Below are positions 3,548 to 26,731 of a stretch of 64,000 bases of DNA, piece by piece. The notes below the pieces were generated by a model. That model saw nothing but the letters and a program-made list of their open reading frames with translations, was not told the DNA's origin and searched no databases. The DNA lies in sequence record NC_031010.1. One strand, given 5' to 3'. Position 1 is the stretch's first letter; every line of letters begins with the position of its first letter. The position numbers and the translations under genes are program-made.

Positions 3548-4435
3548 ATGGCAATCTATCAAGATTCAGCGACGGTGCTATTGGCAGCAATCAACAGCGC
3601 CAACTCGCTCACCATCAAAGCCACGGACTTTGTCTACAGTGCCCCGAAAGATATTCGTGGAACGGATAAAGGCGACAGTACGGGCAAAAACACCCAGATT
3701 AAAATCACCGCGGACGGTGTGGCTGGGTCAGCATGGTCTGGTAAGAAAAGTGTCTGCTATAACCGCCTGCGGATTGAAGACATCGCGGTGCTGTTGGGTA
3801 ACACCTTAGCCATTGGGCCGAGCAACGACACCCTGTTTGCCGCCTTGGTGGGTTTAAACCAGCGCTACGGGTTTGTGTTTGCACAGTCAGATTTGGTCGA
3901 TGCACAAATCGAGTGGAACTCGGAGAAGACCAGCGGGAAAGTGCTGGTAAGGGCGAACGCATCTTCCATCGGCTGGATTGGTCAATACCAGTTCAACGTG
4001 GTGAAAGGTGATGAGACCTTGGTGTCCTCGGTAACGACGACGGTACTGACCGGTCTGAAGTACCCGAACGGCCAGATGGGCTCCGAGTCGGTTACGGCGA
4101 CGATGGCTCAAGTCTACTCTTACCCGTTCAACTTCTCAGCGTATCGCGACCAGTTGTTAGCCTTCCAGAAAGGCGTGTTGACCGGTACACCGCTGACCGA
4201 CATGACCAACATCCTGAAAGCCATCACAGGCAACCCATGGGTGGCAACCAGCGCTTCCGCTTGGGGTCTGGCTGGGGCAGAAGTGCTCAGCACCGGTCTG
4301 AACGATGCGGTTACTCTGCCGACCAACAGCAAGTACAAATACGTGCTGGCGCTCAAACTCCCTGCCACGACGACGAACATTGCCGGTACGATGTATCTGC
4401 AGTTCAACGACGTGGACGACCCGAACGAGGTGTAA
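3548..4435 (+). CDS. Virion structural protein, same family
   Basis: Motifs KNTQI, CYNRLRI, LNQRYGF, GWIG and GTMYLQFN. Confidence 0.75.
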   Translation: MAIYQDSATVLLAAINSANSLTIKATDFVYSAPKDIRGTDKGDSTGKNTQIKITADGVAGSAWSGKKSVCYNRLRIEDIAVLLGNTLAIGPSNDTLFAALVGLNQRYGFVFAQSDLVDAQIEWNSEKTSGKVLVRANASSIGWIGQYQFNVVKGDETLVSSVTTTVLTGLKYPNGQMGSESVTATMAQVYSYPFNFSAYRDQLLAFQKGVLTGTPLTDMTNILKAITGNPWVATSASAWGLAGAEVLSTGLNDAVTLPTNSKYKYVLALKLPATTTNIAGTMYLQFNDVDDPNEV

Positions 4436-4438
4436 TCA

Positions 4439-5266
4439 ATGCTCAACTACGCGAAACCGTCGAACGAACTGGTGTTCGACCTTATTAACCGCGACAACCC
4501 GGGGCTGCCGATTAAGGCATCCGTCGATAACTGCATTGTTGAGAAACTCACCACGGTCACCGCTAACGCTGCGAACAACTTCCGTAACACGAAGGCGCGT
4601 CTGCGGGGTGTGCAGGGGTCTGGGTTCCGTGACCAAATCACCGTGTACTACGACCGTGTTGATATCGGTCGGCTGTTACCGTGGTCGAACTCCACCTACG
4701 CCCAGTTTGTTACCTTCACGGCACCGAACATCCACAACGCCCTGTCGGTTATCTTCGACATGTACGGCATTAACTTCGGTACCATGGACTTGGTTAACAA
4801 CAGCATGGGTGGGGTGTCAACGCCGAGTTACAACGCCAACGTTTACTTCCAGACGTTGCCTAACTCCCCGGCGTATATCGGCACCGTGCTGATGCGTTTC
4901 AGTCGCGGTTTACCGGTGTTGGATACCTCGGTAACAGTGGAGGTGATTCCTGCGCTGTCACAACCGGTTGACCCCGCGTTGAATAAGAAGTGCGTGGATA
5001 TGCTGACGTACGGTATCGACTTCACAGCGTATAAAAACCTGTTGACGGTCGATTCCTCAGGTCTGCCACAGTGGGGTGGCTTACGTGCCATTCTGGACTC
5101 ACTGGGTATCCCGGCGTACAGTGCGCCGGTGTCCAGTAACTTGGTGCAGGATGTCCCGACCAGCAGTGCGCAGTTTGCCAACAAGGACTACGACCGTGTG
5201 GTCATCCAAACCGGCATTGACGAAGCCGGTATAAAGGGTAACGCCTACTATCACTACAATAGTTAA
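4439..5266 (+). CDS. Virion structural protein, same family
   Basis: Motifs INRDNPGLP, RNTKA, YYDRVDI and GNAYYHYN. Confidence 0.75.
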   Translation: MLNYAKPSNELVFDLINRDNPGLPIKASVDNCIVEKLTTVTANAANNFRNTKARLRGVQGSGFRDQITVYYDRVDIGRLLPWSNSTYAQFVTFTAPNIHNALSVIFDMYGINFGTMDLVNNSMGGVSTPSYNANVYFQTLPNSPAYIGTVLMRFSRGLPVLDTSVTVEVIPALSQPVDPALNKKCVDMLTYGIDFTAYKNLLTVDSSGLPQWGGLRAILDSLGIPAYSAPVSSNLVQDVPTSSAQFANKDYDRVVIQTGIDEAGIKGNAYYHYNS

Positions 5267-5269
5267 CAC

Positions 5270-5296
5270 AAGGCCCTTCGGGGCCTTTTCTTTTTT
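5270..5296 (+). terminator. Intrinsic terminator
   Basis: AAGGCCC-TTCG-GGGCCTT followed by TTCTTTTTT. Confidence 0.9.
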
Positions 5297-5316
5297 GATG
5301 GCGGGTAGGAGCCGAT

Positions 5317-14945: not shown

Positions 14946-15587
14946 TTATTCTACCGACGGATTAAACTCCGCCGCGTCGAGTGAGGCGTAATCCCCCTGC
15001 TCCGCAAATGCACGGATACGGGTTTTGTACGCGGTCAACTGAACGTGCAGCTGTGCGTTACGTGCGACAATCAGAGAGTACAGCATCTCAGTGTCTTTCG
15101 CTTCCCACTCTTCCAGCGCTTGGTTATCGGCAGTCACCCAATACTCCGGCACGGTGTTCGTTTGCACGAAGCCGGCCAGTGTGGTCAGGGTCTCACCTGC
15201 GGTCTGGAACATGTGGTCTTTGTACGCAATGTCAGCCGTGACCGCTTCACCGTACGCTGCATTAGTGGCCTGGAGTTTCTTGGCCAGCAGGGTATAGCAA
15301 TACGCTTTGGTCGACTGCAACTCTTTGAGGTAATCCTTCACCTGAATCCCCAGCACGTCTTTGATAAACGCTTTGGTTTGGCGTAGGGTGTAGTTGGCTT
15401 CGAACTGGGTCTGACCCTGCTCTTGCAACTGACGCAGTGCATCTTTCTCACTGAGTCCCTCTAAGAGTGCGTAGTGTAACCGCTTGGCCAGCGTAACTTC
15501 ACCGTTGGGGTCAAAGAACAACCCCGTGCGGTCAATCTGGCCATCGCCGTTTTCAAACCGAGCTTTTATCTCGTCAGCACTAAGCAT
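14946..15587 (-). CDS. Protein with C-terminal DUF4376-like (fibre-associated) domain
   Basis: IAYKDHMFQT...YWVTADNQAL...LIVARNAQLHVQLTAYKTRI...LDAAEF resembles the W.xADN pattern of DUF4376 proteins found beside phage fibre genes. Confidence 0.55.
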   Translation of the reverse strand: MLSADEIKARFENGDGQIDRTGLFFDPNGEVTLAKRLHYALLEGLSEKDALRQLQEQGQTQFEANYTLRQTKAFIKDVLGIQVKDYLKELQSTKAYCYTLLAKKLQATNAAYGEAVTADIAYKDHMFQTAGETLTTLAGFVQTNTVPEYWVTADNQALEEWEAKDTEMLYSLIVARNAQLHVQLTAYKTRIRAFAEQGDYASLDAAEFNPSVE

Positions 15588-16114
15588 TCTTTCTCTCCCA
15601 CGAATCCAACTTTGGTCAACATGTCATAGGACATGATTTCAAAGTCGATACGAAGATCCAGACGGTACTGCAAGTTCGGCAGTGGCTGGTCATTTTCTTG
15701 GAACGCCTGCATGAACATCATGTCATCGAAGTAATGACACGCGCTCTCTGGGTTACGCACCATCCAGACCGGGACATCCGGGAAGGACAGACACAGTGCC
15801 ACCAGAGAATCACCGCCACGATCGATGGTGCCGGTGCGCAGGATGTTTACCTTTGAAGCAGGGGCCGCCAGAATACGCGCTTCGAAACCCGGGTTACGCT
15901 TTTCGATTTCTGCTAACGAGTCGTGGCCGTTCTCCACGCACTGAATCGGCAGGACAACGTTAAGAGCAAAACGGTTAATCAAACGCAGCCAGTGATCGTT
16001 GAAATCATCGGCAGGCACGATAGCGTGAATGTTAAACAGCTTATAATGCTGTAAGAACGCTTCGATTTTGCGACTATCGTACTTCGTAAAATTCTGGAGA
16101 AGCAGGCTTTTCAT
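15566..16114 (-). CDS. Hypothetical accessory protein of the radical SAM cluster
   Basis: A 182-aa ORF overlapping both neighbours, suggesting translational coupling. Confidence 0.6.
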   Translation of the reverse strand: MKSLLLQNFTKYDSRKIEAFLQHYKLFNIHAIVPADDFNDHWLRLINRFALNVVLPIQCVENGHDSLAEIEKRNPGFEARILAAPASKVNILRTGTIDRGGDSLVALCLSFPDVPVWMVRNPESACHYFDDMMFMQAFQENDQPLPNLQYRLDLRIDFEIMSYDMLTKVGFVGEKECLVLTR

Positions 16115-17471
16115 TCTTGAATTGTTCCTTGCGGTCAGTTTGTTCCACAGCCATGGTCATCTCACGGATGGCGGTGACGTGTAAAGGCTGTTCTGCAGCT
16201 TCGCGGGTGAGTTTCTCTTCAACAGCAAAGTTGCGCTTCTGTTGGCACTGGTAACAGTTACAAACAGACTTGTCGTACTGCGATTCGTACGACCCGAAAC
16301 GTTGTTTCCACCACTGCGCCACTAAGAGCTTCGCGGTAGTCCAACCACACTGGCGACGTTCGCCGTGATACTCTTTACGAGCGTCTTCTTCACCGTCGCC
16401 GTTTTCATACGCTGCCGCCACACACGAGGCACACAGGTGCTTCGCTGGGCAACCGATGCACTGGTCAGGATACGACTTCCACTGTTCCTGAACTTCGGCC
16501 AGCAGTTTCCCGCCGTCGGTGTTAACGATTTGCTGACCTTCGAGTTTACCGATGGCCTGACGGGTGGTCACGGTAGACATGAAGCGGTTACACCCGAAGA
16601 TGTTCCGGTCAAAGCCCAGACAGGTCATGTACACCGTGGTACCGCAGTGAGGACGCAGACGTTGTGGGTCGTAGCGTACCGAGTCATCATGGATGAGCTT
16701 CTCACGCCAGTCCGGGTTCCACAGCTGGTCAACATCCAGACCGTCTGGCAGCACGTGACCGATTTCAGAGTTCTGGTCTAAGTGCAGACCCTTCTCAATG
16801 AAATACTCCGCTACTTCGATAAACTGGTTGGCAATCTCGAGTGCCATCTGGCGCGGTAACACGTCTTCGAAGACCACGTTACCGTACAGACGACCGCCCC
16901 CGGTCACATCAATCAGCGACTTCATCCCAGCACCGTACTGCATCAGCGTTTCTTTCGTGAAGGTGGCTTTGACCCCAATCTCACGAACGCCAATTTCTTG
17001 CAGAAGCTTATAACCGGCGACCGCTGCTTGGTAAGACCCTTGACGGGACGTGGTGAAGATACGGTACTTATCGTGGGTCTCAGGCAGACCATCGATAGAG
17101 ACACCGATCGACAGGTAATCTTTCCAACGGTTCAGAATCTCCAGCGCCAGCGGTTTGTCAAACAACGTCCCGTTGGTGGAGATAGAGAACACGTAAGGCA
17201 GGTTGTGCTTTTTGCACAGCTCTTCTGCGGTTTCGAAGGCCGCTTTCAGCAGCTTCGGCTGCATGAAGGGTTCGCCACCGATGATATCAATGATGATACC
17301 GTCGATACCTTGGTTCTTCGAGAAGAAGCGATGTTTATCGCGATTAAAGCAGGCGTGAATAAAATCAACGACATCAGCGACTTTGTTATTACGCGGATAC
17401 TTACGCTCGTAGCAATACTCACAGTCGAGGTTGCACGATAGGTTGGTGACTATCTGGTAGGTTGCATCCAT
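16074..17471 (-). CDS. Radical SAM/SPASM peptide maturase (CXXX-repeat target type)
   Basis: CNLDCEYC (CX3CX2C), GGEP, ISTNGT, VSIDG; SPASM cysteines HCG...GCNRF and CIGCPAKHLCASC...QCGW; extra C-terminal CNCYQC. Confidence 0.92.
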   Translation of the reverse strand: MDATYQIVTNLSCNLDCEYCYERKYPRNNKVADVVDFIHACFNRDKHRFFSKNQGIDGIIIDIIGGEPFMQPKLLKAAFETAEELCKKHNLPYVFSISTNGTLFDKPLALEILNRWKDYLSIGVSIDGLPETHDKYRIFTTSRQGSYQAAVAGYKLLQEIGVREIGVKATFTKETLMQYGAGMKSLIDVTGGGRLYGNVVFEDVLPRQMALEIANQFIEVAEYFIEKGLHLDQNSEIGHVLPDGLDVDQLWNPDWREKLIHDDSVRYDPQRLRPHCGTTVYMTCLGFDRNIFGCNRFMSTVTTRQAIGKLEGQQIVNTDGGKLLAEVQEQWKSYPDQCIGCPAKHLCASCVAAAYENGDGEEDARKEYHGERRQCGWTTAKLLVAQWWKQRFGSYESQYDKSVCNCYQCQQKRNFAVEEKLTREAAEQPLHVTAIREMTMAVEQTDRKEQFKNEKPASPEFYEVR

Positions 17472-17483
17472 CCCTATCTCCCC

Positions 17484-18368
17484 TTATTTTTTAATTGGAT
17501 TAAGCCAGTTCATGATGTAACGGTAGCCGTGCTCACCGATGGCCAGTGCAATCTTGTTGCAGCCACGGTCCACGACCATCTCAACGTTCTCAGGAACTTG
17601 CAGGTCGCCATTCGGTTGACTGACGATAATTTCACTACAGGCATTACACGCATCTTCTTCGAAGAACTTCTCGAGTTTGATGATGGTGTCACGCTTGTTA
17701 ATGCGGTTGAGCTTACGCATGTTGTCTTGCAGACGCTCAAAGCCGTACACGAAGTTTAACACGTGGTCAGGCGACAGCACTTTCTTCATCTGGTTATCGA
17801 ACAGGTAGTTCATGCCGAGGAAACCAAGATGGTGAATGGCGTCTTGCATTTTCATCATGCCTTCGTGCCAGCGCATGTCCCCGATCTTCTCACGGGTTAA
17901 CACTGACCAGAGGATAACGTTGTCCAGCTGGGCGATGACTTCAAACGCTTCGGTATCACCGGAACGAGCAAAGTCCATTAAACCACGGGCATCATCTTCG
18001 TAACCGTCGATGGAGACCACAACACGATGGAAGGTTTTCAAAAACTCGACTTGCTCTAAACGTAACTTACGTCCGTTTGTGAAAAGATAGTGCACGGCAG
18101 AAGGACGTTCTACGCGCATCATCTCGACCGACTCAACGAGTTTACGGTAAGACAGTAACGGCTCACCCCCCGTCCAGATGATCTCTTCCACACCGGGATT
18201 CTTTTTCAGTAACTCCATCATTGCCTCTTCATGGGTTTTACGAGACACGTCCCCTTTGACCATGTGAATCTCACCCGCACAAAACGAACAATTGAGGTTA
18301 CACTTCGACGTCAATGCTACGTTAATGGTCTTTGCAGGTGAGTAAACATCTTTACTTAACGTTCTCAT
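17484..18368 (-). CDS. Second radical SAM protein with a short Cys-containing C-terminus
   Basis: CNLNCSFC, TGGEP, FTNG, VSIDG; C-terminal ACNAC...PNGDL...GCN. Confidence 0.88.
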   Translation of the reverse strand: MRTLSKDVYSPAKTINVALTSKCNLNCSFCAGEIHMVKGDVSRKTHEEAMMELLKKNPGVEEIIWTGGEPLLSYRKLVESVEMMRVERPSAVHYLFTNGRKLRLEQVEFLKTFHRVVVSIDGYEDDARGLMDFARSGDTEAFEVIAQLDNVILWSVLTREKIGDMRWHEGMMKMQDAIHHLGFLGMNYLFDNQMKKVLSPDHVLNFVYGFERLQDNMRKLNRINKRDTIIKLEKFFEEDACNACSEIIVSQPNGDLQVPENVEMVVDRGCNKIALAIGEHGYRYIMNWLNPIKK

Positions 18369-19278
18369 CCGTCATTCCGTACAGGCGACGTTGGAAAGAG
18401 AACAGTGGGTCGGTGTCTCGTACATCTTCACCCGCCTTCAACAGACGTGGTGAGCGATACGCATCGTACAGTGCGTTAAGAACGGATTGACGCTCACCCA
18501 TGCGGATAAGGTCGTCCAGTTCAACCGGGGACGAAATAAACGGTTCCAGCGCAGCCTGTTGTTCTTCGGTGAACTCTTTCAGCTGTGACTGGAGCAGGAA
18601 GCGAATCAGTTTGCGATCATCCGCCGTGGAGTTCGGGACAGCGCCAAACTCAGTCTGACAGAGATAGGCCATCCACGGTTTACGGATGCGGAGTGTTTGC
18701 GCATGCGGGTCTGCGATGTAGACCCACTCTTGCTTCTCTGCATCCCATGCAAACTTATAACTAAACGCGAGTAAGTCTGCCAAGCAGTCGATATTCGCGG
18801 CTTCAAGGCCAGAGAACGGGTGATACATTTCACGGTCTTTCTCCACGCTTCCAGTGCCGGCTTCCACCAGTTTGAATAAGTGGGACCAGCTTCCGCAGTA
18901 ATCGCTGCTGTAGCTACGCACGCACACCGGACGCATGCCGAGTTCTTTAAAGGACTCGAACATCAGTTCCAGTGGTGCACTATAGTTCAGTACCGAATCT
19001 GTGAAAAAATACTTGTCGTTGACAAGCTTCCCGGTAAAACCAGAACCGCCTAAGGCGAACTGAATGGATTTCACGTTCAGCTTGCCCACCGTGGCCGCAT
19101 CAATCACGGTGTACTCTTTTTTCGTAAAGTTGCGACCGCGAAGCTTAGGCCATTCAAACTGATCCATGGCAATCAGCCGCAGCTCGTCGTTGATGTGTGC
19201 GTTAACACTGTCCGGTGACGAGATGTGAATTGGGTAATTCATGCTCGTGCGGTACGCAAGATGATCGTTACTCTTCAT
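18352..19278 (-). CDS. Hypothetical accessory protein of the radical SAM cluster
   Basis: A 308-aa ORF with SD AGGGG, lying between the precursors and the radical SAM genes and overlapping the latter. Confidence 0.7.
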   Translation of the reverse strand: MKSNDHLAYRTSMNYPIHISSPDSVNAHINDELRLIAMDQFEWPKLRGRNFTKKEYTVIDAATVGKLNVKSIQFALGGSGFTGKLVNDKYFFTDSVLNYSAPLELMFESFKELGMRPVCVRSYSSDYCGSWSHLFKLVEAGTGSVEKDREMYHPFSGLEAANIDCLADLLAFSYKFAWDAEKQEWVYIADPHAQTLRIRKPWMAYLCQTEFGAVPNSTADDRKLIRFLLQSQLKEFTEEQQAALEPFISSPVELDDLIRMGERQSVLNALYDAYRSPRLLKAGEDVRDTDPLFSFQRRLYGMTDENVK

Positions 19279-19290
19279 TAGGTTCCCCTG

Positions 19291-19500
19291 TTAACTCGGG
19301 AAGGAGACTGATTTCGCACCGCCTGAGCTACTCCAGCTACAGGTTCCGCCGCAGTTGTACGCGCCAGCACGAATCCCACCCAAGTTGTTGGTGTTGTTAC
19401 ACGTTCCACGGTTGGCGATATAATCAACCGCCTGTCCCGTGGTAATATAGCGTTCGATGCTCGCCACGCGGTTACCGATGTCTTTCAAGCTTACTGCCAT
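19291..19500 (-). CDS. Short Cys-containing precursor-like peptide P3
   Basis: MAVSLK leader, NTNNLGG box and CGGTCSW core motif; SD AGGAG. Confidence 0.8.
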   Translation of the reverse strand: MAVSLKDIGNRVASIERYITTGQAVDYIANRGTCNNTNNLGGIRAGAYNCGGTCSWSSSGGAKSVSFPS

Positions 19501-19509
19501 AGCCTACTC

Positions 19510-19938
19510 CTACGGTCCAGAACAGCCTGCTCCACAACTCCCGCCACAGCCACTACCGCAACTTCCCGAGCACCCGCCAGAACATTTGCCTGAACAGTTA
19601 CCCGAGCATGTGCCAGAACAACCGCCGGAGCAGCCGCCGCCACAGTTACCGCCACAGCTGCCACTACAACCACCGGTGCAGCTAGATGAACAGTTGCCCG
19701 AACAGGATGACGAACACCCAGACGAGCAGTTACCCGTACAGCCACCGGAACAGCCGTTACCACACGTCCAGCTACAAGAGCCGTTACAGTGCAGTGCCGC
19801 TGGGGTGAAGCCGTTGAGTAAATCAGCATTATTAGTAGTGCGTCCACCGATGTAGTTTTGCACGCCTGCTTCAGTTTTTAGTGCGGTGTTCTCAATATTG
19901 ACAACACGGTCACGCACCGATTTTAATGAAATCGCCAT
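19510..19938 (-). CDS. CXXX-repeat precursor-like peptide P2
   Basis: A 50-aa leader (MAISLK...NADLLNG) plus 23 perfect CXXX units rich in Gly/Ser, ending CSGP; SD AGGAG. Confidence 0.9.
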   Translation of the reverse strand: MAISLKSVRDRVVNIENTALKTEAGVQNYIGGRTTNNADLLNGFTPAALHCNGSCSWTCGNGCSGGCTGNCSSGCSSSCSGNCSSSCTGGCSGSCGGNCGGGCSGGCSGTCSGNCSGKCSGGCSGSCGSGCGGSCGAGCSGP

Positions 19939-19946
19939 TTCCGCTC

Positions 19947-20336
19947 CTAAGGGCTGCTACAACCAGCACTGCAGTTACTGCTACAGGTGCCAGAGCAACC
20001 GCTAGAGCAGCTGCTGCCACATGAACCTGAACAGCCGCTTGAACAGCCACCAGAACACGAGGATGAGCAACCTCCCCCGCAACCACCAGAACACGAGCCC
20101 GAACAGTTACCTGTACACACGCCGCTACAGCTTCCTGAGCAGCTCGAGCAACCGTGACTACAACCTGACGAACACGTCCAACTGCACGACCCGTTACAAC
20201 GGGCCCACGTATCAGGTTGGCCTGCCAATAGATTCGCATTGTGAACTTTGCTGTTCACCTGCCCCTCTACGGACGCGCCGGTTGCTGCTTGGACTCGGTC
20301 AAGACGGGCACTTAGTTCTTTAAGTGATATCGCCAT
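19947..20336 (-). CDS. CXXX-repeat precursor-like peptide P1
   Basis: A 46-aa leader (MAISLK...NANLLAG) plus 21 Cys (20 CXXX units and one CXX), ending CSSP; SD AAGGGAAGG. Confidence 0.9.
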   Translation of the reverse strand: MAISLKELSARLDRVQAATGASVEGQVNSKVHNANLLAGQPDTWARCNGSCSWTCSSGCSHGCSSCSGSCSGVCTGNCSGSCSGGCGGGCSSSCSGGCSSGCSGSCGSSCSSGCSGTCSSNCSAGCSSP

Positions 20337-20356
20337 TACCTTCCCTTTTTAATAAG

Positions 20357-20390
20357 ACACGGGCACTCGCCATATAGACGAGGCCCGTGT
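20357..20390 (-). promoter_or_regulatory. Inverted repeat with TATG in the loop, upstream of P1
   Basis: ACACGGGC/GCCCGTGT and CTCG/CGAG stems; the minus-strand loop reads TCTATATGG. Confidence 0.45.
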
Positions 20391-20399
20391 GTAATTATA

Positions 20400-21605
20400 T
20401 TAACGTGAACCGGCATCAGCCTGTACATCGTCACGTGTGGTCAAGTTGGCGTTGACGTGCACGTTTGCCTGAACCACGCCGCCATACTGCTTGTGCAGGT
20501 ACTGGGTGTGTGGATCGGCTGCAGACAGGTGGTTAGCGAGCGTCTGGTTAACACTGGCGATGTTGCCCTCGGTCGTGGTGACACGACGGGTCAGTGCGGT
20601 CAGGTCAACACGCAGCTGGTCAATCTGCTGCTGTGCGTCACCGGCTCCGGACTTGAGGTCATCAATCTGGTCTTGCAACCCAACGGCCGTTTGCTTCAAC
20701 TCATTCACGGTTTTCTGTAACGTCAATACCAGTGAATTGAGGTTGGCCACAATCAACGTCATCTTCTGGTAGTTTTGGTCTACCGTGTTCAGTTGGTCGT
20801 TGAAGGTGGTCAGCGAACTGACGATGGCATCAATGCGCCCACCCAGTGCCGTATCAGCAGCCTTAAGGTCGCCAATCTGGACGAGGGTTGCATCGATAGC
20901 TGCCTGCACGCCGGCAATCAACGCACGGATTTCGGTTGCGGTCAAACCATCAATATCGTGGATATCAAGGTTGTGCACGTTACCCGTGGCATTGATGTGG
21001 GCATTCAGCGCGTCCAAGAAGTTATTCTTGATATCGCCGATGATGTCTTTGATTTTCTCAAGCTGAACGGCATCGCCTGAACCAATCGCATCCAGAATAC
21101 CCGAGAGCAGGGTAATGACGTATTCAAAACCAAAGATATCGCCAACGTCTTTAAACGCCGGGGCACCCGGTAGCGTATCCGGGAAATCGATTAAGTCGGC
21201 AAAGTTCACCTTCTTATTATCAATGCCCAGAATCGCAATCGCATTTTCAATCGCAGTCACGTTCGCAGACATTGGCCCACCGACAACCTGAGCGGTCACG
21301 ATGATGTCTGTTGGGATGCTGCTGTTGGTCACTACAACTGCCATCACGACTTCTTTGTTGCCCGAGAGCTTCATGTAGGCCGGATGAGCGAAAATCAGTT
21401 CGTAGTCGGTACCACGTTTATACGGCGTGGTGGGCGAGTTCGTGGCACGCAGTTTAAAACTGTCTGCGTAAAACGGACCTGCCGGAAAAGCAAAAGACCG
21501 GTTAACTTTACCGGAACCCAAGACCACGGGGATACTTACCGCGTTCGATGTCAGAGTTCCTTTAAGGTCAAGCGGATACTGGAAAATAATATCACTCATC
21601 TCCAA
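20400..21605 (-). CDS. Virion fibre-like protein with long coiled coil
   Basis: Shared N-terminal PFY...G.DY domain, HINATGNVH, a long heptad region and C-terminal HLSAADPHTQY (phage fibre motif). The start may be ATG 21599. Confidence 0.7.
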   Translation of the reverse strand: MEMSDIIFQYPLDLKGTLTSNAVSIPVVLGSGKVNRSFAFPAGPFYADSFKLRATNSPTTPYKRGTDYELIFAHPAYMKLSGNKEVVMAVVVTNSSIPTDIIVTAQVVGGPMSANVTAIENAIAILGIDNKKVNFADLIDFPDTLPGAPAFKDVGDIFGFEYVITLLSGILDAIGSGDAVQLEKIKDIIGDIKNNFLDALNAHINATGNVHNLDIHDIDGLTATEIRALIAGVQAAIDATLVQIGDLKAADTALGGRIDAIVSSLTTFNDQLNTVDQNYQKMTLIVANLNSLVLTLQKTVNELKQTAVGLQDQIDDLKSGAGDAQQQIDQLRVDLTALTRRVTTTEGNIASVNQTLANHLSAADPHTQYLHKQYGGVVQANVHVNANLTTRDDVQADAGSR

Positions 21606-21643
21606 GCTCCCTTACGAGAGGGCATCCCTGCCCTCACCAGTGG

Positions 21644-24600
21644 TTAAGACGACAAATTACTCGTTGGGATTAACATAAGATTGATGGTTACCTCACCCAG
21701 CGTGACCATCTTTCCGTCAGGCCCGAAGAACTTCGAGGCGACAACGACTTCCCGGTTCGACCCATTCGCCCGCTCCAAGAACGGCGGACAATAGCTGATT
21801 TCCGGAGCCACCACACTCACTACCCCTGTGGTGTTTGCCACCGGAACATAGACATGGGAGACGGTCTCCAACACGTTGAGGTTACCGGACTGCGTACCCT
21901 GGTCTGAGGTGAATGCCACCACCGATGTCCCGCTCGAGCGAATTAACTCGCGCTCGGTCGTCCCGTTCCAATCGTAGGCAATAAAGGCAATGTGGCAGAT
22001 GGTGCCACCGGCGGTACCTGCCTGAATGACTTCGATCCCAACCGTGTGCTGCCCGTTAGACACCGGGAAGTCCTGGGTGGCGAGCGCGTTTGACCCGTTC
22101 GAGGTAATGCCGGATGCCACACGCACGCCATCAATGTAGACGTGACACATGTCATCCACCGCAAACTTAAGTCGCAGCGTGCCCCCGGTGGTGGTCACTT
22201 TGAACTTGGTCGCATACGTACCGTAGCCCGGAATCGTCCGTGGGTTGATGTCAATCCAGATAAGCCCCAACGCATTTGCATCCGGGTTCTCCGCTGCTGT
22301 CACGGCCACTGCACGGGCAGGAGCCCAGAACAGCTCAGGCAACACTGCCCCGGAATACCACGGCTGGGAAGCCGGGACATAACGGTTAATCAGCGGACGA
22401 GACAACAATGATCCCACCGCCAGTGACAGTGCGGACTGACCCACGTACCCATCACCCGAGGTCGCAATCGGTAACGGTTCCAGCAGACCGAGCGGTGACT
22501 CTGCCCGTTCACGCACCACGTTCGAGCCGTGGCTGTACGCAACCCCCTCATGCTCCTCTAACTGACGTACCGCCCCCAGACGTTTCACCGGGGTAATGTT
22601 CTCCTCGATGATACGGCTGCTGTCGGTCTTGACGTAACCCACGTAAAGCAGGTTACTGCTGTCAGGGTAACGTTCGGTACTGACCCGGTACCGCGCCTTC
22701 GTGGTGCCTTCGTCTGGGTAGACTTCAGCGTGGAAATAGAAGGTCTGGTTTCGGTAGTCACTGAACGCCGACGAGAAGTCAATGCTGTACTGGTCGAGCA
22801 CGTACTCTTTCGAGTTAATGAACAGTCGCTCTGACTCGGTCAGGTAAAGAATCCACCCTTCCGCCGTCTTCACGCCCGCCAACACCACCGGTTGCGCATT
22901 CGCCGGGGAACCAAACGGACTGGCCATGAAGTCCGCAATCGGATACGCGTCGCCTGAGGAGAACACCGGGTCCAGTTTGAAATACGAATTCACCATCGCA
23001 TTCAAATCTTTCACCCACACCCACGTGTTTGGGCTGTACGTTGGTCGGTCAAGCCCCAGTGCCCCGGTGGAGCTGGTCCACTGGTTACCGGTCAGGGTCA
23101 ACACCGCACGGAAGTTCAATGCACCCCCATTCCCGACTTGGGCGATACGCAGCACGGACGGCAGATAGAGCACAAACTTCTGCCCATCGTTGGACACGAG
23201 TTGCGGCTGACCAAAGCGGCGGTCTTTTCCACCAAAGCTGAAATCCAATCCGACGTTGGCGATGTTCAAGTCAAGGTCGTTCTGGAACGTCAACAGTTGG
23301 AGGGTGCTGGAGCTAAACGCGAGAATCCCGTTGGAAACCGACGGGTACATCACAAAGTAGTAATGGTCGATTTTATTCACACCGTCTACAAAGCGTTGTG
23401 CCGTGGCCTGTCCCAAGAAGAGCTGCTGCGGTGTCCCAATCGCAAAGCCCCACAGTGCGACATACAGTTTCCCGATTTGGTCAGCGGCCATCAGTCGCTC
23501 GGATGCGTAGCCGTTCGCTGCACCCGCTGGGGCGTTAGCCAACATGATACTGCGGACTTTCGCCCACTCGGTATCGTTCAGCGTCAGTTTGTCGGCGGTA
23601 AAGTTCGGGTTCCCGGTCACGTTCTTGTACTGCACCGTTTCAGGCTTAGTAAAGAAGCACCCGTTCAGCGTGCCTTTATCTGCCGCATTCACTTTCACCA
23701 TCGCCAGCTGGGACATCGCAGCGTAGGTTGCCGTGGTGATAACACGCCGGTTGTTGGTTGGACCAAAGCCCCCGTAACCCGGTACGTCGTAATCCGTGTC
23801 GGTTGAATACAACACCTCAACGCACAACGCATCCTTGGTACCGGTGAGCCAGATGGCTTTAGAGTCCCCACCGAAGAACAGCGGGTAGGCCATGCCAGAG
23901 GCGTACACAGACCCACGTCCTTGGTCGAGTTTGGTGGTGTTACCCACAACCGCACCTGTCGTCACATCGGCTGACAACGAGTCGTAATGGTCACCCCCGC
24001 CCGGAACACCCATCGTGACTATCTGCACCGGGACATCACTGTCATTACCAACCGAAAGCACAGCGACCTTGTCATCGTGGTGTGCCACAAAGGCACGCTG
24101 GTTGGCTTGGGTCCCTGTCCACTTCAGTGGGTAGTTCGTGGTCAACAAATCCACGCCGGTTTTGTACTTCGCACCGGTATCCAGTAACTGCAGTGGGAAG
24201 ATTTCCGGGTGCTCCAGTGTCACCGTCAGGGTATCGAAGTCGAGCGTGAATGTCGTGTACCAGTTCTTGAAGCTCAATGACTCGGTTGCTTTCGCCAGCC
24301 AAATCGTTGGCGTCATTGCCACCCGTAACACTTCATCCTCTTGCCCCAACACCCGGTTACACGTTGGCCCGTGCACCAGATTGCGCCCTACCGTGAAGGT
24401 ACTGAGTGCGGCTGGGCTGATGTACGCTACCCGGTCGGTCTCGGTGTTGGCGGTGTCGTACCCCCCTTCGGCACGGAGCAGTAACCACGAACCTGCCACG
24501 CCCTTCATCCCGTTCAAGGTTTCAAGGGTAAAGGCCACGTCTTGTGCGCCGATGCTATTGAGTGAAACCGACGCCAAGGCCACACGGTAACTGTCGTTCG

Positions 24601-26731
24601 CCAGTCGGGTGCGCAGCAGATACACTTTACTGCCGTAGACCACGAGGTCATCCGTTTCCCCGGCGGGCACCATTGCCGCATTACTGCCTGCCACATCCAT
24701 GATGGTCGGGAACGTCACTCGCACCACATTCAGGTGGCGATTGTGGTCGGCTGTCCCGGCGAGGTCAACGAGGTAATACGCCCCGTCGCTGCCTAAACAG
24801 ATAAGGGCATCCTGCCCCGGCACCACCACTGCACTGAGTGTCACCCCCGGGTACTTGGTGGTCATCCCGGCTGGCTGATAGCGCTGTGAAGTTTGTTGGA
24901 CGTTGCTGAGCGTGTTGTCGTCGTTAAAGGTACCGTAAGCGTAATAGATGTGGCGATCAGTCAGACCGTCCGTTCCGTTACGCAGAATATACAACCGGTC
25001 CCCTTCAAAACGCATCGCCCCGTAGAACTGGCTGTTGTTCTTGCCATACCCTTCGTAGTTACCCTGTGCCGGGATAGGCAGGAACCCGAGGTTGCCGTAC
25101 GACGCCCCAATAACCGCCCACGTTGGAATCAGACCGTTGGCTTTGCTTTCCAAATCCGCCAAAGTCTTCTCAAAGAGATACCCCTGTTTAGCCGTCACCA
25201 CACGGTCTGTGCTGGCATCGATAATATCCCAGAGTAACACCAAGCCGGCTGCCGAAGAGCTGGCGTAGGGTACGTTGGTCACGTCTGCGAGGGTATGGGT
25301 GTGGTTGGTCAGGGATTTGTTGGCCACGGCGGCGGTTAACGCTTTGGTTACCGGCTTATCAAGCGGTGCGGTGTTCTGCATCTTCTCGACACCGACGTCC
25401 GCAGGCGTCAGGGTTAAGGTCTGGTCTGCATCAAAACCTTTGCCGTTGACGGTGTAAGTGTCATCGACGTAGTTCCCCAGCAAATCCCGCATCGCGGTAA
25501 TACCCGCCTGTGAAATTGCATAACCGTCACTGAGTGAGGTACGGTTGGACGTGACCTTGATCAGACCCCGCACCCCCACTGAGGCTTCGGGCAGGTTCGC
25601 TTCCAGACGGAACGGGGCGTAGGACTTGCCTGACCCGTAGACCTTCACGGTTTCCGTAGAGGACATGTACGCGTTAGCTGCTTTGAGTTTCACCTCGTGC
25701 AGGTACATCTCCACCATGTCGGGTGTAATCAAATACACCCCGTTGAAGACCGGAGCCAATGCATCAGGGCCCGAGTGCACCATTAAGGTGTTCAGCCCCG
25801 CTGACATCTCCACCGCCACACCCGGGTTCGTGTTCGCACTGTCTGCGGTGAACCGTAAAGTCTTTTTGGTGGAGACCAACACGTTCGGCCCTTTGAAGGT
25901 GATAACGTGGTCGTTGTTGGCGGTGGTGTACGTCAGGACATTGTTGTTGAGAACACGCAAGCGACCGAACACGTCATTAAACGCGGTGTCGTTACGCATC
26001 AGCAAATCAACGTGCTTTTGCTGCAAACCGGTTGTGGCCATCAGGGTCACGAGCTGGTCAATGGTGCGACCAAATGCCCGGGTGGCGTCCACGGCTTTAT
26101 CCGTGACCTTCAAGGCCCCGATGTCATCCGCAGTGTACGAATGCCCGTGGGACTTCAGCAGGTGGTGCTGATACATCCCATCGTCGAACACTTTCTTGCC
26201 GGTTTGATAGATGAGCTCAGTGACTTCACTGTACGCGGCATCCATGTCCCCTGCCCGCTTAATCAGGCCCAAACGAATGTCATTTAACGCGGAGACAATC
26301 TCATCGCGGGCAATGGCTTCGTCCAAGTCCTGTGGCGGGTCGATAGCTGGAATGGTCGGCGCATAGCGCATCAACGCAGACCAGTCTTCGTTACGGGGGT
26401 CTTTCAGGTCACTGCTGACCAGCCATTTGCCAATCTCGCTCTGCGGTACGCGGTAATCACGCCCCACAGCGTAGATGCTGTATTTGATGGCATCGTGGTT
26501 CAGCAGCATTATCCCGCCAAACACCGCGGCTTGGAATGCCTCAGCGGCTTCTTTGTAATAGTAGCCGAGGTAATAGTCCATGCCCTCGATAAGCGGGACA
26601 TCATTTAAATCGGTGATAACCAGCCCGGTGCGGTAGAAAGGGCCTTCCGGCGGAATAACCGTATTGAAACGGTTTGGGAACGTCGAGACTTTCAACGTGC
26701 CTTCAAACTGGGCCGGGGTTTCCGTCGCCAT
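21644..26731 (-). CDS. Long tail fibre protein (1695 aa)
   Basis: N-terminal GPFY...GMDY; fibre repeats PEASVGVRGLI and PYASSSAAGLV; TPADVGV..NTAPLDKPV; C-terminal lectin/PA14-like segment AVDDMCHVYIDG...GQHTVGIEV. Confidence 0.8.
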   Translation of the reverse strand: MATETPAQFEGTLKVSTFPNRFNTVIPPEGPFYRTGLVITDLNDVPLIEGMDYYLGYYYKEAAEAFQAAVFGGIMLLNHDAIKYSIYAVGRDYRVPQSEIGKWLVSSDLKDPRNEDWSALMRYAPTIPAIDPPQDLDEAIARDEIVSALNDIRLGLIKRAGDMDAAYSEVTELIYQTGKKVFDDGMYQHHLLKSHGHSYTADDIGALKVTDKAVDATRAFGRTIDQLVTLMATTGLQQKHVDLLMRNDTAFNDVFGRLRVLNNNVLTYTTANNDHVITFKGPNVLVSTKKTLRFTADSANTNPGVAVEMSAGLNTLMVHSGPDALAPVFNGVYLITPDMVEMYLHEVKLKAANAYMSSTETVKVYGSGKSYAPFRLEANLPEASVGVRGLIKVTSNRTSLSDGYAISQAGITAMRDLLGNYVDDTYTVNGKGFDADQTLTLTPADVGVEKMQNTAPLDKPVTKALTAAVANKSLTNHTHTLADVTNVPYASSSAAGLVLLWDIIDASTDRVVTAKQGYLFEKTLADLESKANGLIPTWAVIGASYGNLGFLPIPAQGNYEGYGKNNSQFYGAMRFEGDRLYILRNGTDGLTDRHIYYAYGTFNDDNTLSNVQQTSQRYQPAGMTTKYPGVTLSAVVVPGQDALICLGSDGAYYLVDLAGTADHNRHLNVVRVTFPTIMDVAGSNAAMVPAGETDDLVVYGSKVYLLRTRLANDSYRVALASVSLNSIGAQDVAFTLETLNGMKGVAGSWLLLRAEGGYDTANTETDRVAYISPAALSTFTVGRNLVHGPTCNRVLGQEDEVLRVAMTPTIWLAKATESLSFKNWYTTFTLDFDTLTVTLEHPEIFPLQLLDTGAKYKTGVDLLTTNYPLKWTGTQANQRAFVAHHDDKVAVLSVGNDSDVPVQIVTMGVPGGGDHYDSLSADVTTGAVVGNTTKLDQGRGSVYASGMAYPLFFGGDSKAIWLTGTKDALCVEVLYSTDTDYDVPGYGGFGPTNNRRVITTATYAAMSQLAMVKVNAADKGTLNGCFFTKPETVQYKNVTGNPNFTADKLTLNDTEWAKVRSIMLANAPAGAANGYASERLMAADQIGKLYVALWGFAIGTPQQLFLGQATAQRFVDGVNKIDHYYFVMYPSVSNGILAFSSSTLQLLTFQNDLDLNIANVGLDFSFGGKDRRFGQPQLVSNDGQKFVLYLPSVLRIAQVGNGGALNFRAVLTLTGNQWTSSTGALGLDRPTYSPNTWVWVKDLNAMVNSYFKLDPVFSSGDAYPIADFMASPFGSPANAQPVVLAGVKTAEGWILYLTESERLFINSKEYVLDQYSIDFSSAFSDYRNQTFYFHAEVYPDEGTTKARYRVSTERYPDSSNLLYVGYVKTDSSRIIEENITPVKRLGAVRQLEEHEGVAYSHGSNVVRERAESPLGLLEPLPIATSGDGYVGQSALSLAVGSLLSRPLINRYVPASQPWYSGAVLPELFWAPARAVAVTAAENPDANALGLIWIDINPRTIPGYGTYATKFKVTTTGGTLRLKFAVDDMCHVYIDGVRVASGITSNGSNALATQDFPVSNGQHTVGIEVIQAGTAGGTICHIAFIAYDWNGTTERELIRSSGTSVVAFTSDQGTQSGNLNVLETVSHVYVPVANTTGVVSVVAPEISYCPPFLERANGSNREVVVASKFFGPDGKMVTLGEVTINLMLIPTSNLSS

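Follow-up and report, generated by a model that had tools for sequence, protein, structure and literature searches.

Period-four cysteine ladders in the tail-fibre module of Erwinia phage vB_EamM_Kwan as putative substrates of co-encoded radical-SAM enzymes

Introduction

What might a phage gain from a pair of small proteins in which cysteine recurs at every fourth residue, what would enzymes of the radical S-adenosylmethionine (radical-SAM) class encoded alongside be doing with them, and to which part of the phage would the product belong? These questions are raised by a 64,000-nucleotide stretch of the record NC_031010.1 (the whole of which is referred to as the window), which is part of the 246 kb genome of Erwinia phage vB_EamM_Kwan (Wellingtonvirus; host Erwinia amylovora), and in which a position equals the genome position minus 124,000. 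The two "ladder" proteins, named P1 and P2 here, had been noticed in a first-pass annotation made from the bare sequence, and the answer argued for below, to which we would give a probability of roughly 0.55 and which is built from sequence comparisons, is that they are tail-fibre module proteins whose ladders would be thioether-cross-linked by the co-encoded radical-SAM enzymes. As far as we could find, the tail-fibre setting across phage lineages and prophages, the set of gp179, gp180 and gp181 characteristic of the phage form, and the wrong-frame calls lying over the ladder genes are new; a literature search for a ladder/radical-SAM system in phage tail fibres, in which subscription journals were not covered, found nothing.

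Coding frames of the ladder genes

The genes and annotated frames in question are the following (loci from other genomes are designated by L numbers throughout):

P1: 19947..20336, minus strand, ladder protein of 129 aa with 21 Cys (phrog_6085, E 7e-28)
P2: 19510..19938, minus strand, ladder protein of 142 aa with 23 Cys (phrog_6085, E 5e-35)
P3: 19291..19500, minus strand, ladder-less paralogue of 69 aa with 3 Cys (phrog_6085, E 7e-25), annotated as gp182
gp183 (RefSeq): 19478-19855, plus strand, a frame antisense to P2
gp184 (RefSeq): 19910-20239, minus strand, a different minus frame overlapping P1

It could be argued that gp183 and gp184 are the real genes here and that the ladder is a by-product of GC-rich sequence with a period of three, as both frames are annotated in RefSeq and the one antisense to P2 is open and has a low omega (0.12-0.17). 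Comparison of Kwan with three relatives, however, gave a dN/dS of 0.04-0.08 for P1 and 0.04-0.09 for P2 in the Cys frame, with 65-78% of the differences at codon position 3, no indels and identical protein lengths, whereas the omega of the gp184 frame was 1.6-9, and that of the antisense frame (0.12-0.27 overall), its lowness being the usual artefact of a shared wobble position, was above the Cys frame value in every comparison (pEa_SNUABM_11, the one relative for which this was measured, shares 82.7% DNA identity with Kwan). The alternative frames are, moreover, not kept as open reading frames (ORFs) in SPN3US or CR5, where other wrong frames have been called, while the Cys frame holds its start, Shine-Dalgarno sequence, length and Cys count in all relatives and its proteins match both TIGR04114 and phrog_6085. 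In Kwan, GGGAAGG is situated 3-4 nt upstream of the P1 ATG and AGGAG 6 nt upstream of that of P2, P3 likewise having a Shine-Dalgarno sequence upstream of its start, and the P1-P2-P3 triad retains its order and frame in SPN3US, CR5 and pEa_SNUABM_11 (P3 is kept in L019 as well). We consider it scarcely credible that the annotated frames are the genes.

P1 and P2 are real genes, mis-called in the four public records inspected: in SPN3US, CR5 and pEa_SNUABM_11, too, the ladder ORFs are either unannotated or overwritten by wrong-frame calls.

Wrong-frame calls over ladder genes: SPN3US gp166 (SPN3US_0166), CR5_157 and pEaSNUABM11_00189, at L003 3925-4260, L004 3697-3909 and L002 6906-7295

Neither P1 nor P2 has an exact match in a collection of about 15 billion predicted proteins, which does contain P3, and since the ladder ORFs are missing from public protein sets, published virion proteomes could not have scored P1 or P2. 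The ladder genes of other SPN3US-like genomes may be mis-called as well.

A protein-level repeat of conserved length

The first-pass annotation had described P2 as 23 uninterrupted CXXX units and P1 as 21 Cys with a single CXX slip (CSSC), with the X residues being nearly all Gly, Ser, Asn or Thr, and all of this is borne out by the minus-strand translation. P1 comprises a 46-aa N-terminal neck with a predicted helix followed by 21 Cys at positions 47-126, the gaps between which are 4 throughout save one gap of 3 at the slip, whereas P2 comprises a 50-aa neck and 23 Cys at positions 51-139 with all gaps being 4; the C-terminal ends are CSSP and CSGP, as had been stated, and Gly/Ser/Asn/Thr account for 57/62 of the non-Cys ladder residues in P1 and 65/69 in P2. 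The necks of P1, P2 and P3 feature an amphipathic helix and an N-x-x-x-L-x-G fibre-type motif, and P3, which has 3 Cys and no ladder, shares with the other two both the N-terminal region and a C-x-G-x-C-S-W start motif, the full ladder-start motif C-x-G-x-C-S-W-x-C being almost invariant.

By an arithmetic estimate, the chance of 23 Cys falling into one of four registers is about (1/4)^22, so that chance can be excluded as the origin of the ladder. It was also rightly observed that the ladder is codon-varied and not a microsatellite: Cys is encoded by 13 TGT and 8 TGC codons in P1 and by 17 TGT and 6 TGC codons in P2, none of the six Ser or four Gly codons goes unused, and Tandem Repeats Finder reports but a single array of 12 nt x 2.8 in the ladder DNA. 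Copies found in a gap-free repeat search are 60-71% alike at spacings that are multiples of 12, and the periodicity is therefore held at the protein level, which excludes a microsatellite.

The comparison of repeat numbers among related phages that the first-pass annotation had proposed was carried out on 13 IMG/VR jumbo-phage loci, each having a neighbouring gp181 gene (described further below). P1 has 21 Cys in 12/12 loci where it was found (no P1 orthologue was picked up in L014), and in every one of these orthologues the fifth Cys is followed by the CSSC slip; for P2, the count is 20-23 Cys in 13/13 loci. The span from the first to the last Cys is 76-80 residues in jumbo-phage P1 and P2, and the P1 and P2 spans of the same phage (L005-L017) differ by 0-2 residues in most cases, despite the slips being at different places; it is only in the Kwan/Wellington lineage that P2 spans 89 residues and is 9 residues longer. 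Since the number of Cys and the span are both fixed, the ladder may form a rod of defined length, and the matched spans suggest that the P1 and P2 chains lie side by side.

Composition of the units was tabulated for 436 CXXX units from 25 ladder proteins:

Position +1: Ser 63%, Gly 15%, Thr 13%
Position +2: Gly 58%, Ser 20%
Position +3: Gly, Ser, Thr, Asn

Cys is the sole invariant residue of the ladder, which is some 80-90 residues long in P1 and P2 and has C-S-G-x as its consensus unit; Asp occurs in none of the 436 units. As a side observation, L016 and L017 (3975-5764) have, between P1 and P2, an additional copy of the small radical-SAM gene (4392-5303).

The radical-SAM enzymes accompanying the ladder

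P1 and P2 score 23.7 and 24.4 bits, respectively, against TIGR04114 (the CXXX-repeat radical-SAM target family; curated cutoff 20), and about 2 kb downstream of the ladder genes, within the same operon-like array, lies a SPASM enzyme scoring 113 bits against TIGR04115 vs a cutoff of 350. That a CXXX ladder goes together with a radical-SAM maturase is known already, as a curated kind of purely in silico standing, and a search for biochemical literature on TIGR04114/TIGR04115, not covering subscription journals, found none. Two enzymes are encoded in Kwan:

gp179: 16074..17471, minus strand, 465-aa radical-SAM/SPASM enzyme without an N-terminal RiPP recognition element (RRE), the predicted ladder maturase (RiPP, ribosomally synthesised and post-translationally modified peptide)
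gp180: 17484..18368, minus strand, 294-aa radical-SAM enzyme (Pfam Radical_SAM, 1.2e-14)

The best NCBIfam match of gp179 is TIGR04115 (E 2e-32, profile positions 7-341 of 359), the second-best being PapB (NF047865; 107 bits vs a cutoff of 340), and a weak match to TIGR04463 (53 bits) is seen as well; judged by these scores, gp179 would represent a related subfamily of TIGR04115, not a member of it. When the gp179 family profile was compared with the Protein Data Bank, thioether former CteB was hit along its residues 96-449 (5WGG; E 3.5e-47, 164 bits), and the sulfatase maturase anSME was hit with E 2.5e-20 and 76 bits. C13/C17/C20 (CX3CX2C), together with seven more Cys, are shared without exception by 13 diverse homologues and correspond to the radical-SAM motif and the SPASM domain. 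No Pfam match to an RRE/PqqD domain was found in gp179, the radical-SAM motif of which begins at residue 13, and as the alignment to CteB begins at residue 96 of the latter, gp179 is without an RRE. Of the positions used in catalytic-site proximity profiling, only 1-4 could be aligned to CteB, with Tyr standing for Phe112, Ile for Phe152, and Ser/Thr and Ser matching (PMC10288494), which is too little to tell a sactisynthase from a ranthisynthase; sactisynthases that resemble ranthisynthases do exist (PMC10288494).

gp180 contains a CX3CX2C motif (C23, C27, C30) and three conserved C-terminal Cys (C241, C244, C270), the latter looking consistent with a twitch-like domain that would hold one auxiliary cluster. 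Among solved structures, gp180 comes closest to the twitch-domain thioether synthase SkfB (E 8e-6), and its best NCBIfam match is PapB. In L023 (7729-9795), a single protein of 688 aa joins the small, twitch-like radical-SAM enzyme to the large SPASM one, and the locus encodes a further SPASM enzyme, of 391 aa, on its own.

The association extends to bacteria. When the enzyme alignment was searched against one genome per bacterial species, the 23 best full-length relatives (25-29% identity) came from Clostridia, Oscillospiraceae, Margulisiibacteriota and others, and a ladder ORF, with up to 122 Cys in 670 aa, adjoins the enzyme in 21 of them, just as an adjacent ladder gene is present in all of the phage enzyme relatives inspected. 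Margulisiibacteriota / Candidatus Termititenax loci L027, L029, L030, L031 and L032 encode ladder proteins of 500-670 aa with 79-122 Cys beside a radical-SAM/SPASM gene.

That the ladder is a substrate of these enzymes would, in our view, be the best explanation of such linkage, because a SPASM enzyme resembling thioether synthases invariably accompanies the ladder, and because in phages it is joined by a second radical-SAM enzyme, once even by fusion; by homology, thioether formation is the most likely reaction. The alternatives that the first-pass annotation had named, a disulfide-laddered solenoid and a metal or Fe-S binding polymer, leave the constant company of the enzymes unexplained. 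Two alternatives of this sort leave the enzymes out of the ladder's chemistry. The first holds that the ladder is a structural metal or Fe-S module, in which the Cys of three chains in a trimeric fibre hold a column of metal (in the T4 gp37 needle, it is His residues that coordinate iron), or which is metallothionein-like, the radical-SAM enzymes being irrelevant or handling clusters. Cys being the sole conserved residue among small and flexible ones would suit this, as would the lack of a self-standing AlphaFold2 fold, expected when a protein folds around its ligands, and the location of the ladder at the fibre tip in fused homologues (see below). It leaves unexplained, however, why two radical-SAM enzymes (a fused pair in one case) and an accessory protein are present in every phage lineage and why the enzyme is linked to a ladder in 21/23 bacterial relatives, and the closeness of gp179 to thioether synthases speaks against it too. 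Pfam and NCBIfam scans of P1 and P2 returned no metallothionein or ferredoxin family, and the uniform CXXXC spacing is unlike the mix of CXC, CC and CXXC typical of metallothioneins. We thus regard a metal-holding ladder as unlikely.

The second alternative is that the ladder forms disulfides after lysis, or stays an unmodified Gly/Ser-rich linker, with the radical-SAM enzymes modifying some other fibre protein or a small molecule. The link between enzyme and ladder is indeed an indirect one, drawn from sequence, gp179 scores below the family cutoffs, and other Cys-rich proteins, beta-helical ones, are stabilised by disulfides. Yet phage assembly takes place in a reducing cytoplasm, the ladder and the enzyme co-occur both in phage loci and in the 21/23 bacterial relatives, the invariant start motif at the ladder looks like a recognition site, and a mere linker would not keep its number of Cys exact in phages that have diverged as far as ~45% identity in gp181. 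Disulfides or an idle linker are, in our opinion, improbable, even more so than a metal column, and a ladder cross-linked by its neighbouring enzymes remains the reading we prefer.

The ladder as a probable part of tail fibres

Where in the phage would such a cross-linked ladder be found? The first-pass annotation, in proposing that a processive enzyme could set about 20 cross-links per chain and give a rigid rod, had treated the products as free peptides; the pairing of enzyme and ladder that it presumed is supported by the TIGR04114 match, the TIGR04115, PapB and CteB matches and the linkage, whereas the notion of free peptides has to give way, as the location in the tail module and the fused homologues point to ladders being tail-fibre parts. 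L018 has a P2-like tail module, in which, right after GpU/gpW/J/I, a 236-aa protein combines a tail-fibre N-terminus (phrog_4209 and phrog_3100, E about 1e-6) with a 36-Cys ladder; genes for a small radical-SAM enzyme, a gp181-like protein and a SPASM enzyme come after it. A 255-aa protein of fibre-like sequence (matching phrog_6085 only) in L020 has a C-terminal 11-Cys ladder, with small radical-SAM, gp181-like and SPASM genes after it. L023 encodes 861-aa and 504-aa proteins with C-terminal ladders, the shorter of which matches tail-fibre PHROGs (E 1e-25), while the longer, without a PHROG match, is taken for a fibre on the strength of its sequence. Two radical-SAM enzymes and a gp181-like gene accompany the ladder in each of these three loci, and in L019 separate P1-, P2- and P3-like genes are located beside Peptidase_S74 fibres.

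In SPN3US-like jumbo phages, the full cassette (P1-P3, gp181, and the twitch-like and SPASM radical-SAM enzymes) was present in every locus inspected and is placed in the tail-fibre/baseplate module, the same placement being seen in P2-like and other phages and in prophages. In Kwan, it is flanked by gp185 and gp186 on one side and by gp177/gp178, an endolysin and a tail assembly chaperone on the other. Among bacterial loci, phage tail genes (tail fibre, tail collar fibre, Prophage_tail, Baseplate_J, minor tail protein) are direct neighbours in at least 6 of the 11 inspected. The best reading of these comparisons is that the ladder would be a C-terminal, distal module of tail-fibre-type proteins, which in SPN3US-like phages has been split into small, short-necked proteins. 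An observation made along the way is that the ladder/radical-SAM pair of a Clostridium prophage (L033 9260-12769) is followed by a 1169-aa protein with Mtd_N (major tropism determinant), lamin-tail and purple-acid-phosphatase-like metallophosphatase domains.

The same evidence bears upon the possibility that P1 and P2 are precursors of a released RiPP, be it a phage bacteriocin or a signal, from which the N-terminal 45-50 residues would be cleaved as a leader. A conserved N-terminus preceding a Cys-rich C-terminus does look like a leader plus core, and NCBIfam names the family as the target of a radical-SAM "peptide maturase". Known RiPP cores, however, are far shorter than the 76-80 residues at which the length of this ladder is held, and a released peptide would sit poorly with ladders fused to tail-fibre proteins of 236-861 aa in other phages, with a cassette that is always within tail-fibre or baseplate genes, and with gp179 having no RRE. 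Pfam, NCBIfam and PHROG scans of the cassette genes found neither a protease nor a transporter or exporter domain among them. In favour of a released RiPP, CrpA and CrpB also have in common a leader-like N-terminus, of 47 residues (PMC13692751). All in all, we deem a released product doubtful, its chances falling between those of the two alternatives weighed above.

Accessory genes and the neighbourhood of the cassette

The genes and the RNA element around the ladder genes and enzymes are the following:

gp181: 18352..19278, minus strand, 308-aa accessory protein, marker of the phage form of the cassette (phrog_8030)
gp178: 15566..16114, minus strand, 182-aa protein after the large enzyme (phrog_7988)
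gp185: 20400..21605, minus strand, 401-aa RefSeq "virion structural protein" directly upstream of P1 (phrog_2163, E 1e-101)
gp186: 21644..26731, minus strand, 1695-aa orthologue of the SPN3US gp168 tail protein (phrog_7449 and phrog_2163)
RNA hairpin: 20350..20395, minus strand, between the gp185 stop and the P1 start, a 14-bp stem followed by CUUAUU

gp181 always has the ladder genes on one side and the radical-SAM genes on the other, and its homologues were found in 62 phage records of the SPN3US-like group, the family as a whole having 90 representatives (E<=1e-3) among 1.84 billion proteins; a gp181-like gene was found in none of the bacterial ladder loci. The confident AlphaFold2 model of the protein (predicted local distance difference test score, pLDDT, 85) has a beta-rich N-terminal half and a helical C-terminal half, and it matched nothing in the Protein Data Bank (Foldseek E>0.3; VIA wide search Z<5), its own family only in AFDB, and unnamed clusters with scores of 0.86 or less in the ESM Atlas. 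No Pfam or NCBIfam match was obtained and no RRE-like fold was seen. gp178, possibly a further member of the cassette, has a homologue at the corresponding place in every SPN3US-like locus and in L019, a distant one (E 3e-7), and the SPN3US counterpart of gp177 carries DUF4376.

gp185 has a long coiled coil (Pfam coiled-coil matches at residues 225-390) and is a candidate for the proximal partner of P1-P3: it may be a short fibre that could dock their necks at its coiled-coil end. Its N-terminal part and the first ~550 residues of gp186 are paralogous, both proteins matching phrog_2163. The gene order around gp186 is shared with SPN3US, the gp168 of which is a tail protein resembling phiKZ gp131 at the baseplate periphery (PMC5105663).

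The hairpin in front of P1 has a dG of -26.5 kcal/mol and a z-score of -4.67, with 0/200 shuffles being as stable, and may act as a partial (leaky) terminator or as an mRNA stabiliser that sets the expression level of the ladder genes. A promoter and terminator scan found fewer promoter-like sites than in shuffles and nothing useful within the cassette. Phage sequence ~95-99% alike to window positions 16000-21700 turns up in metagenomes of plants, seeds, soil and food as well as in metatranscriptome libraries of seeds; the ladder region of these variants showed neither insertions nor deletions.

Proposed maturation of the ladder

Taken together, the comparisons would fit the following course of events. 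P1 and P2 would be late genes of the tail-fibre module, whose products are not free peptides, and during infection gp179 (a SPASM enzyme near thioether synthases) and gp180 (twitch-like) would together modify the ladder in the cytoplasm, with gp181, and perhaps gp178, serving as an accessory protein or scaffold standing in for the missing RRE domain. Each rung would receive one thioether bridge from the Cys sulfur to a carbon. As none of the side chains that could act as acceptor is conserved, and Gly is common at each of the X positions, the acceptor might be either a backbone alpha-carbon (sactionine type) or a neighbouring Cys. The product might be a poly-cyclic rod of fixed length, resistant to proteases and reduction, at the distal end of a fibre near the baseplate, to which it would be attached probably via gp185. 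What the comparisons establish are the coding frames, the constancy of Cys number and ladder length, the family to which the ladder belongs, its linkage to the enzymes and, in other phages, its fusion to tail-fibre proteins; that the enzymes act on the ladder, that they form thioethers and how many, the incorporation of the ladder into the virion and its mechanical role are what we infer from them. The more sweeping claim, that in tailed phages of several unrelated lineages the distal fibre is a poly-thioether ladder with ~20 bridges per chain, made by a radical-SAM pair and a fold-orphan helper, is put forward tentatively, its chances being, as we see it, somewhat short of even.

Several observations weigh against a cross-linked ladder on the virion. 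As regards the chemistry, gp179 scores far below the TIGR04115 and PapB cutoffs, and its reaction could differ; the Asp, Asn, Thr or Gln acceptors of known ranthipeptides are found at no fixed ladder position; and AlphaFold2 yields no ladder fold (the P2 ladder is modelled as unstructured with a pLDDT of about 35, and the monomer on a 22-sequence alignment reached 41). As regards the fibre, Kwan P1 and P2 match no tail-fibre hidden Markov model, phrog_6085 being their only PHROG match, and they are placed among fibre proteins because of genomic context and the fused homologues; P3 is kept although it has no ladder, which the fibre-module model leaves unexplained. Two ladder proteins of an Acidobacteriaceae metagenome-assembled genome (L058 6809-7935) have a twin-arginine-like RRQFLR and a hydrophobic stretch, and no phage-type N-terminus. 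Such signals suggest that exported, non-virion versions may occur, and as there is no phage context around them, the ladder is not exclusively a virion part. Finally, the related phage contigs in seed metatranscriptomes are direction-less Logan contigs that could stem from DNA carry-over, and contigs from RNA libraries do not prove transcription.

Implications

Were the proposal to hold, this would be the first RiPP-type covalent structure made by radical enzymes in a virus particle (we know of no virion protein with dedicated radical enzymes), and TIGR04114/TIGR04115, a long-orphan family, would have to be re-read as mostly a tail-fibre maturation system of phages and prophages, which would also be the first biological role for an in silico radical-SAM family. 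Cross-linking and presence on the virion, if both true, would mean radical-SAM chemistry making a receptor-proximal part of the fibre, a new principle in phage structural biology. Prophage tail modules of gut Clostridia carry the same ladder/radical-SAM system, and SPN3US, for which amber-mutant genetics already exist, is a tractable model for how a SPASM and a twitch-type enzyme would cooperate on a long repeat protein without an RRE. It should also be stressed that mis-called frames have made both virion proteomics and homology surveys blind to P1 and P2.

Comparison with known systems

The closest known counterpart is the TIGR04114/TIGR04115 system per se: the period-4 Cys repeat of the Kwan ladder scores above its curated cutoff, the partner of the ladder is a radical-SAM/SPASM enzyme that matches TIGR04115 best, and ladders adjoin the bacterial relatives of gp179. 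The phage enzyme, however, at 113 vs 350 bits, stands as a subfamily of its own, the phage form comprises gp181 and a second, twitch-like radical-SAM enzyme as well (the former being absent from bacterial loci), and the N-terminal domains of the ladder proteins are unlike.

PapB, which makes freyrasin from PapA, is likewise a SPASM radical-SAM enzyme, one that closes successive short-range thioether rings from the Cys of repeated motifs. Its targets are Cys-X3-Asp motifs, whereas the Kwan-type ladder is without Asp, and PapA yields a small peptide instead of a domain of a fibre. CteB, acting on the SCIFF peptide CteA (thermocellin; PDB 5WGG/5WHY), is a thioether former and the nearest solved structure of gp179, covering both its radical-SAM and SPASM domains; it differs in having an N-terminal RRE (residues 1 to about 95), which gp179 lacks, and in that a SCIFF substrate is ~45 aa long and has six Cys.

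A precedent for a protein, and not a peptide, as the substrate was provided in 2026 by CrpC of Methanococcus voltae (TIGR04463 family), a SPASM enzyme that installs ranthionine cross-links on the Cys-rich repeat protein CrpA, paralogous substrates sharing a leader-like N-terminus (PMC13692751). The repeat in that case is of 17 residues with C-X-X-Q/D, the enzyme has an RRE, and the substrate is a protein of the archaeal cell, outside any context of phages or fibres (PMC13692751). For two radical-SAM enzymes acting together on one substrate, the pair TrnC/TrnD of thuricin CD offers a parallel (PMC12093266), and SkfB, the best solved match of gp180, offers one for a twitch-domain thioether synthase; the similarity is weak in the latter case (E 8e-6), and the products of these systems are secreted antibiotics with a hairpin ring topology.

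As for special chemistry that hardens a part of the virion, two comparisons can be drawn as background. In the iron-binding needle of T4 gp37, a repetitive motif at the distal tip of the fibre makes a thin rod through metal coordination by His, and in the capsid chainmail of HK97 the bonds are autocatalytic isopeptide ones. A cross-linked ladder would be akin to both in hardening the particle by dedicated chemistry, and would differ from both in that the chemistry would be that of radical enzymes, and neither His-metal coordination nor autocatalytic isopeptide formation.

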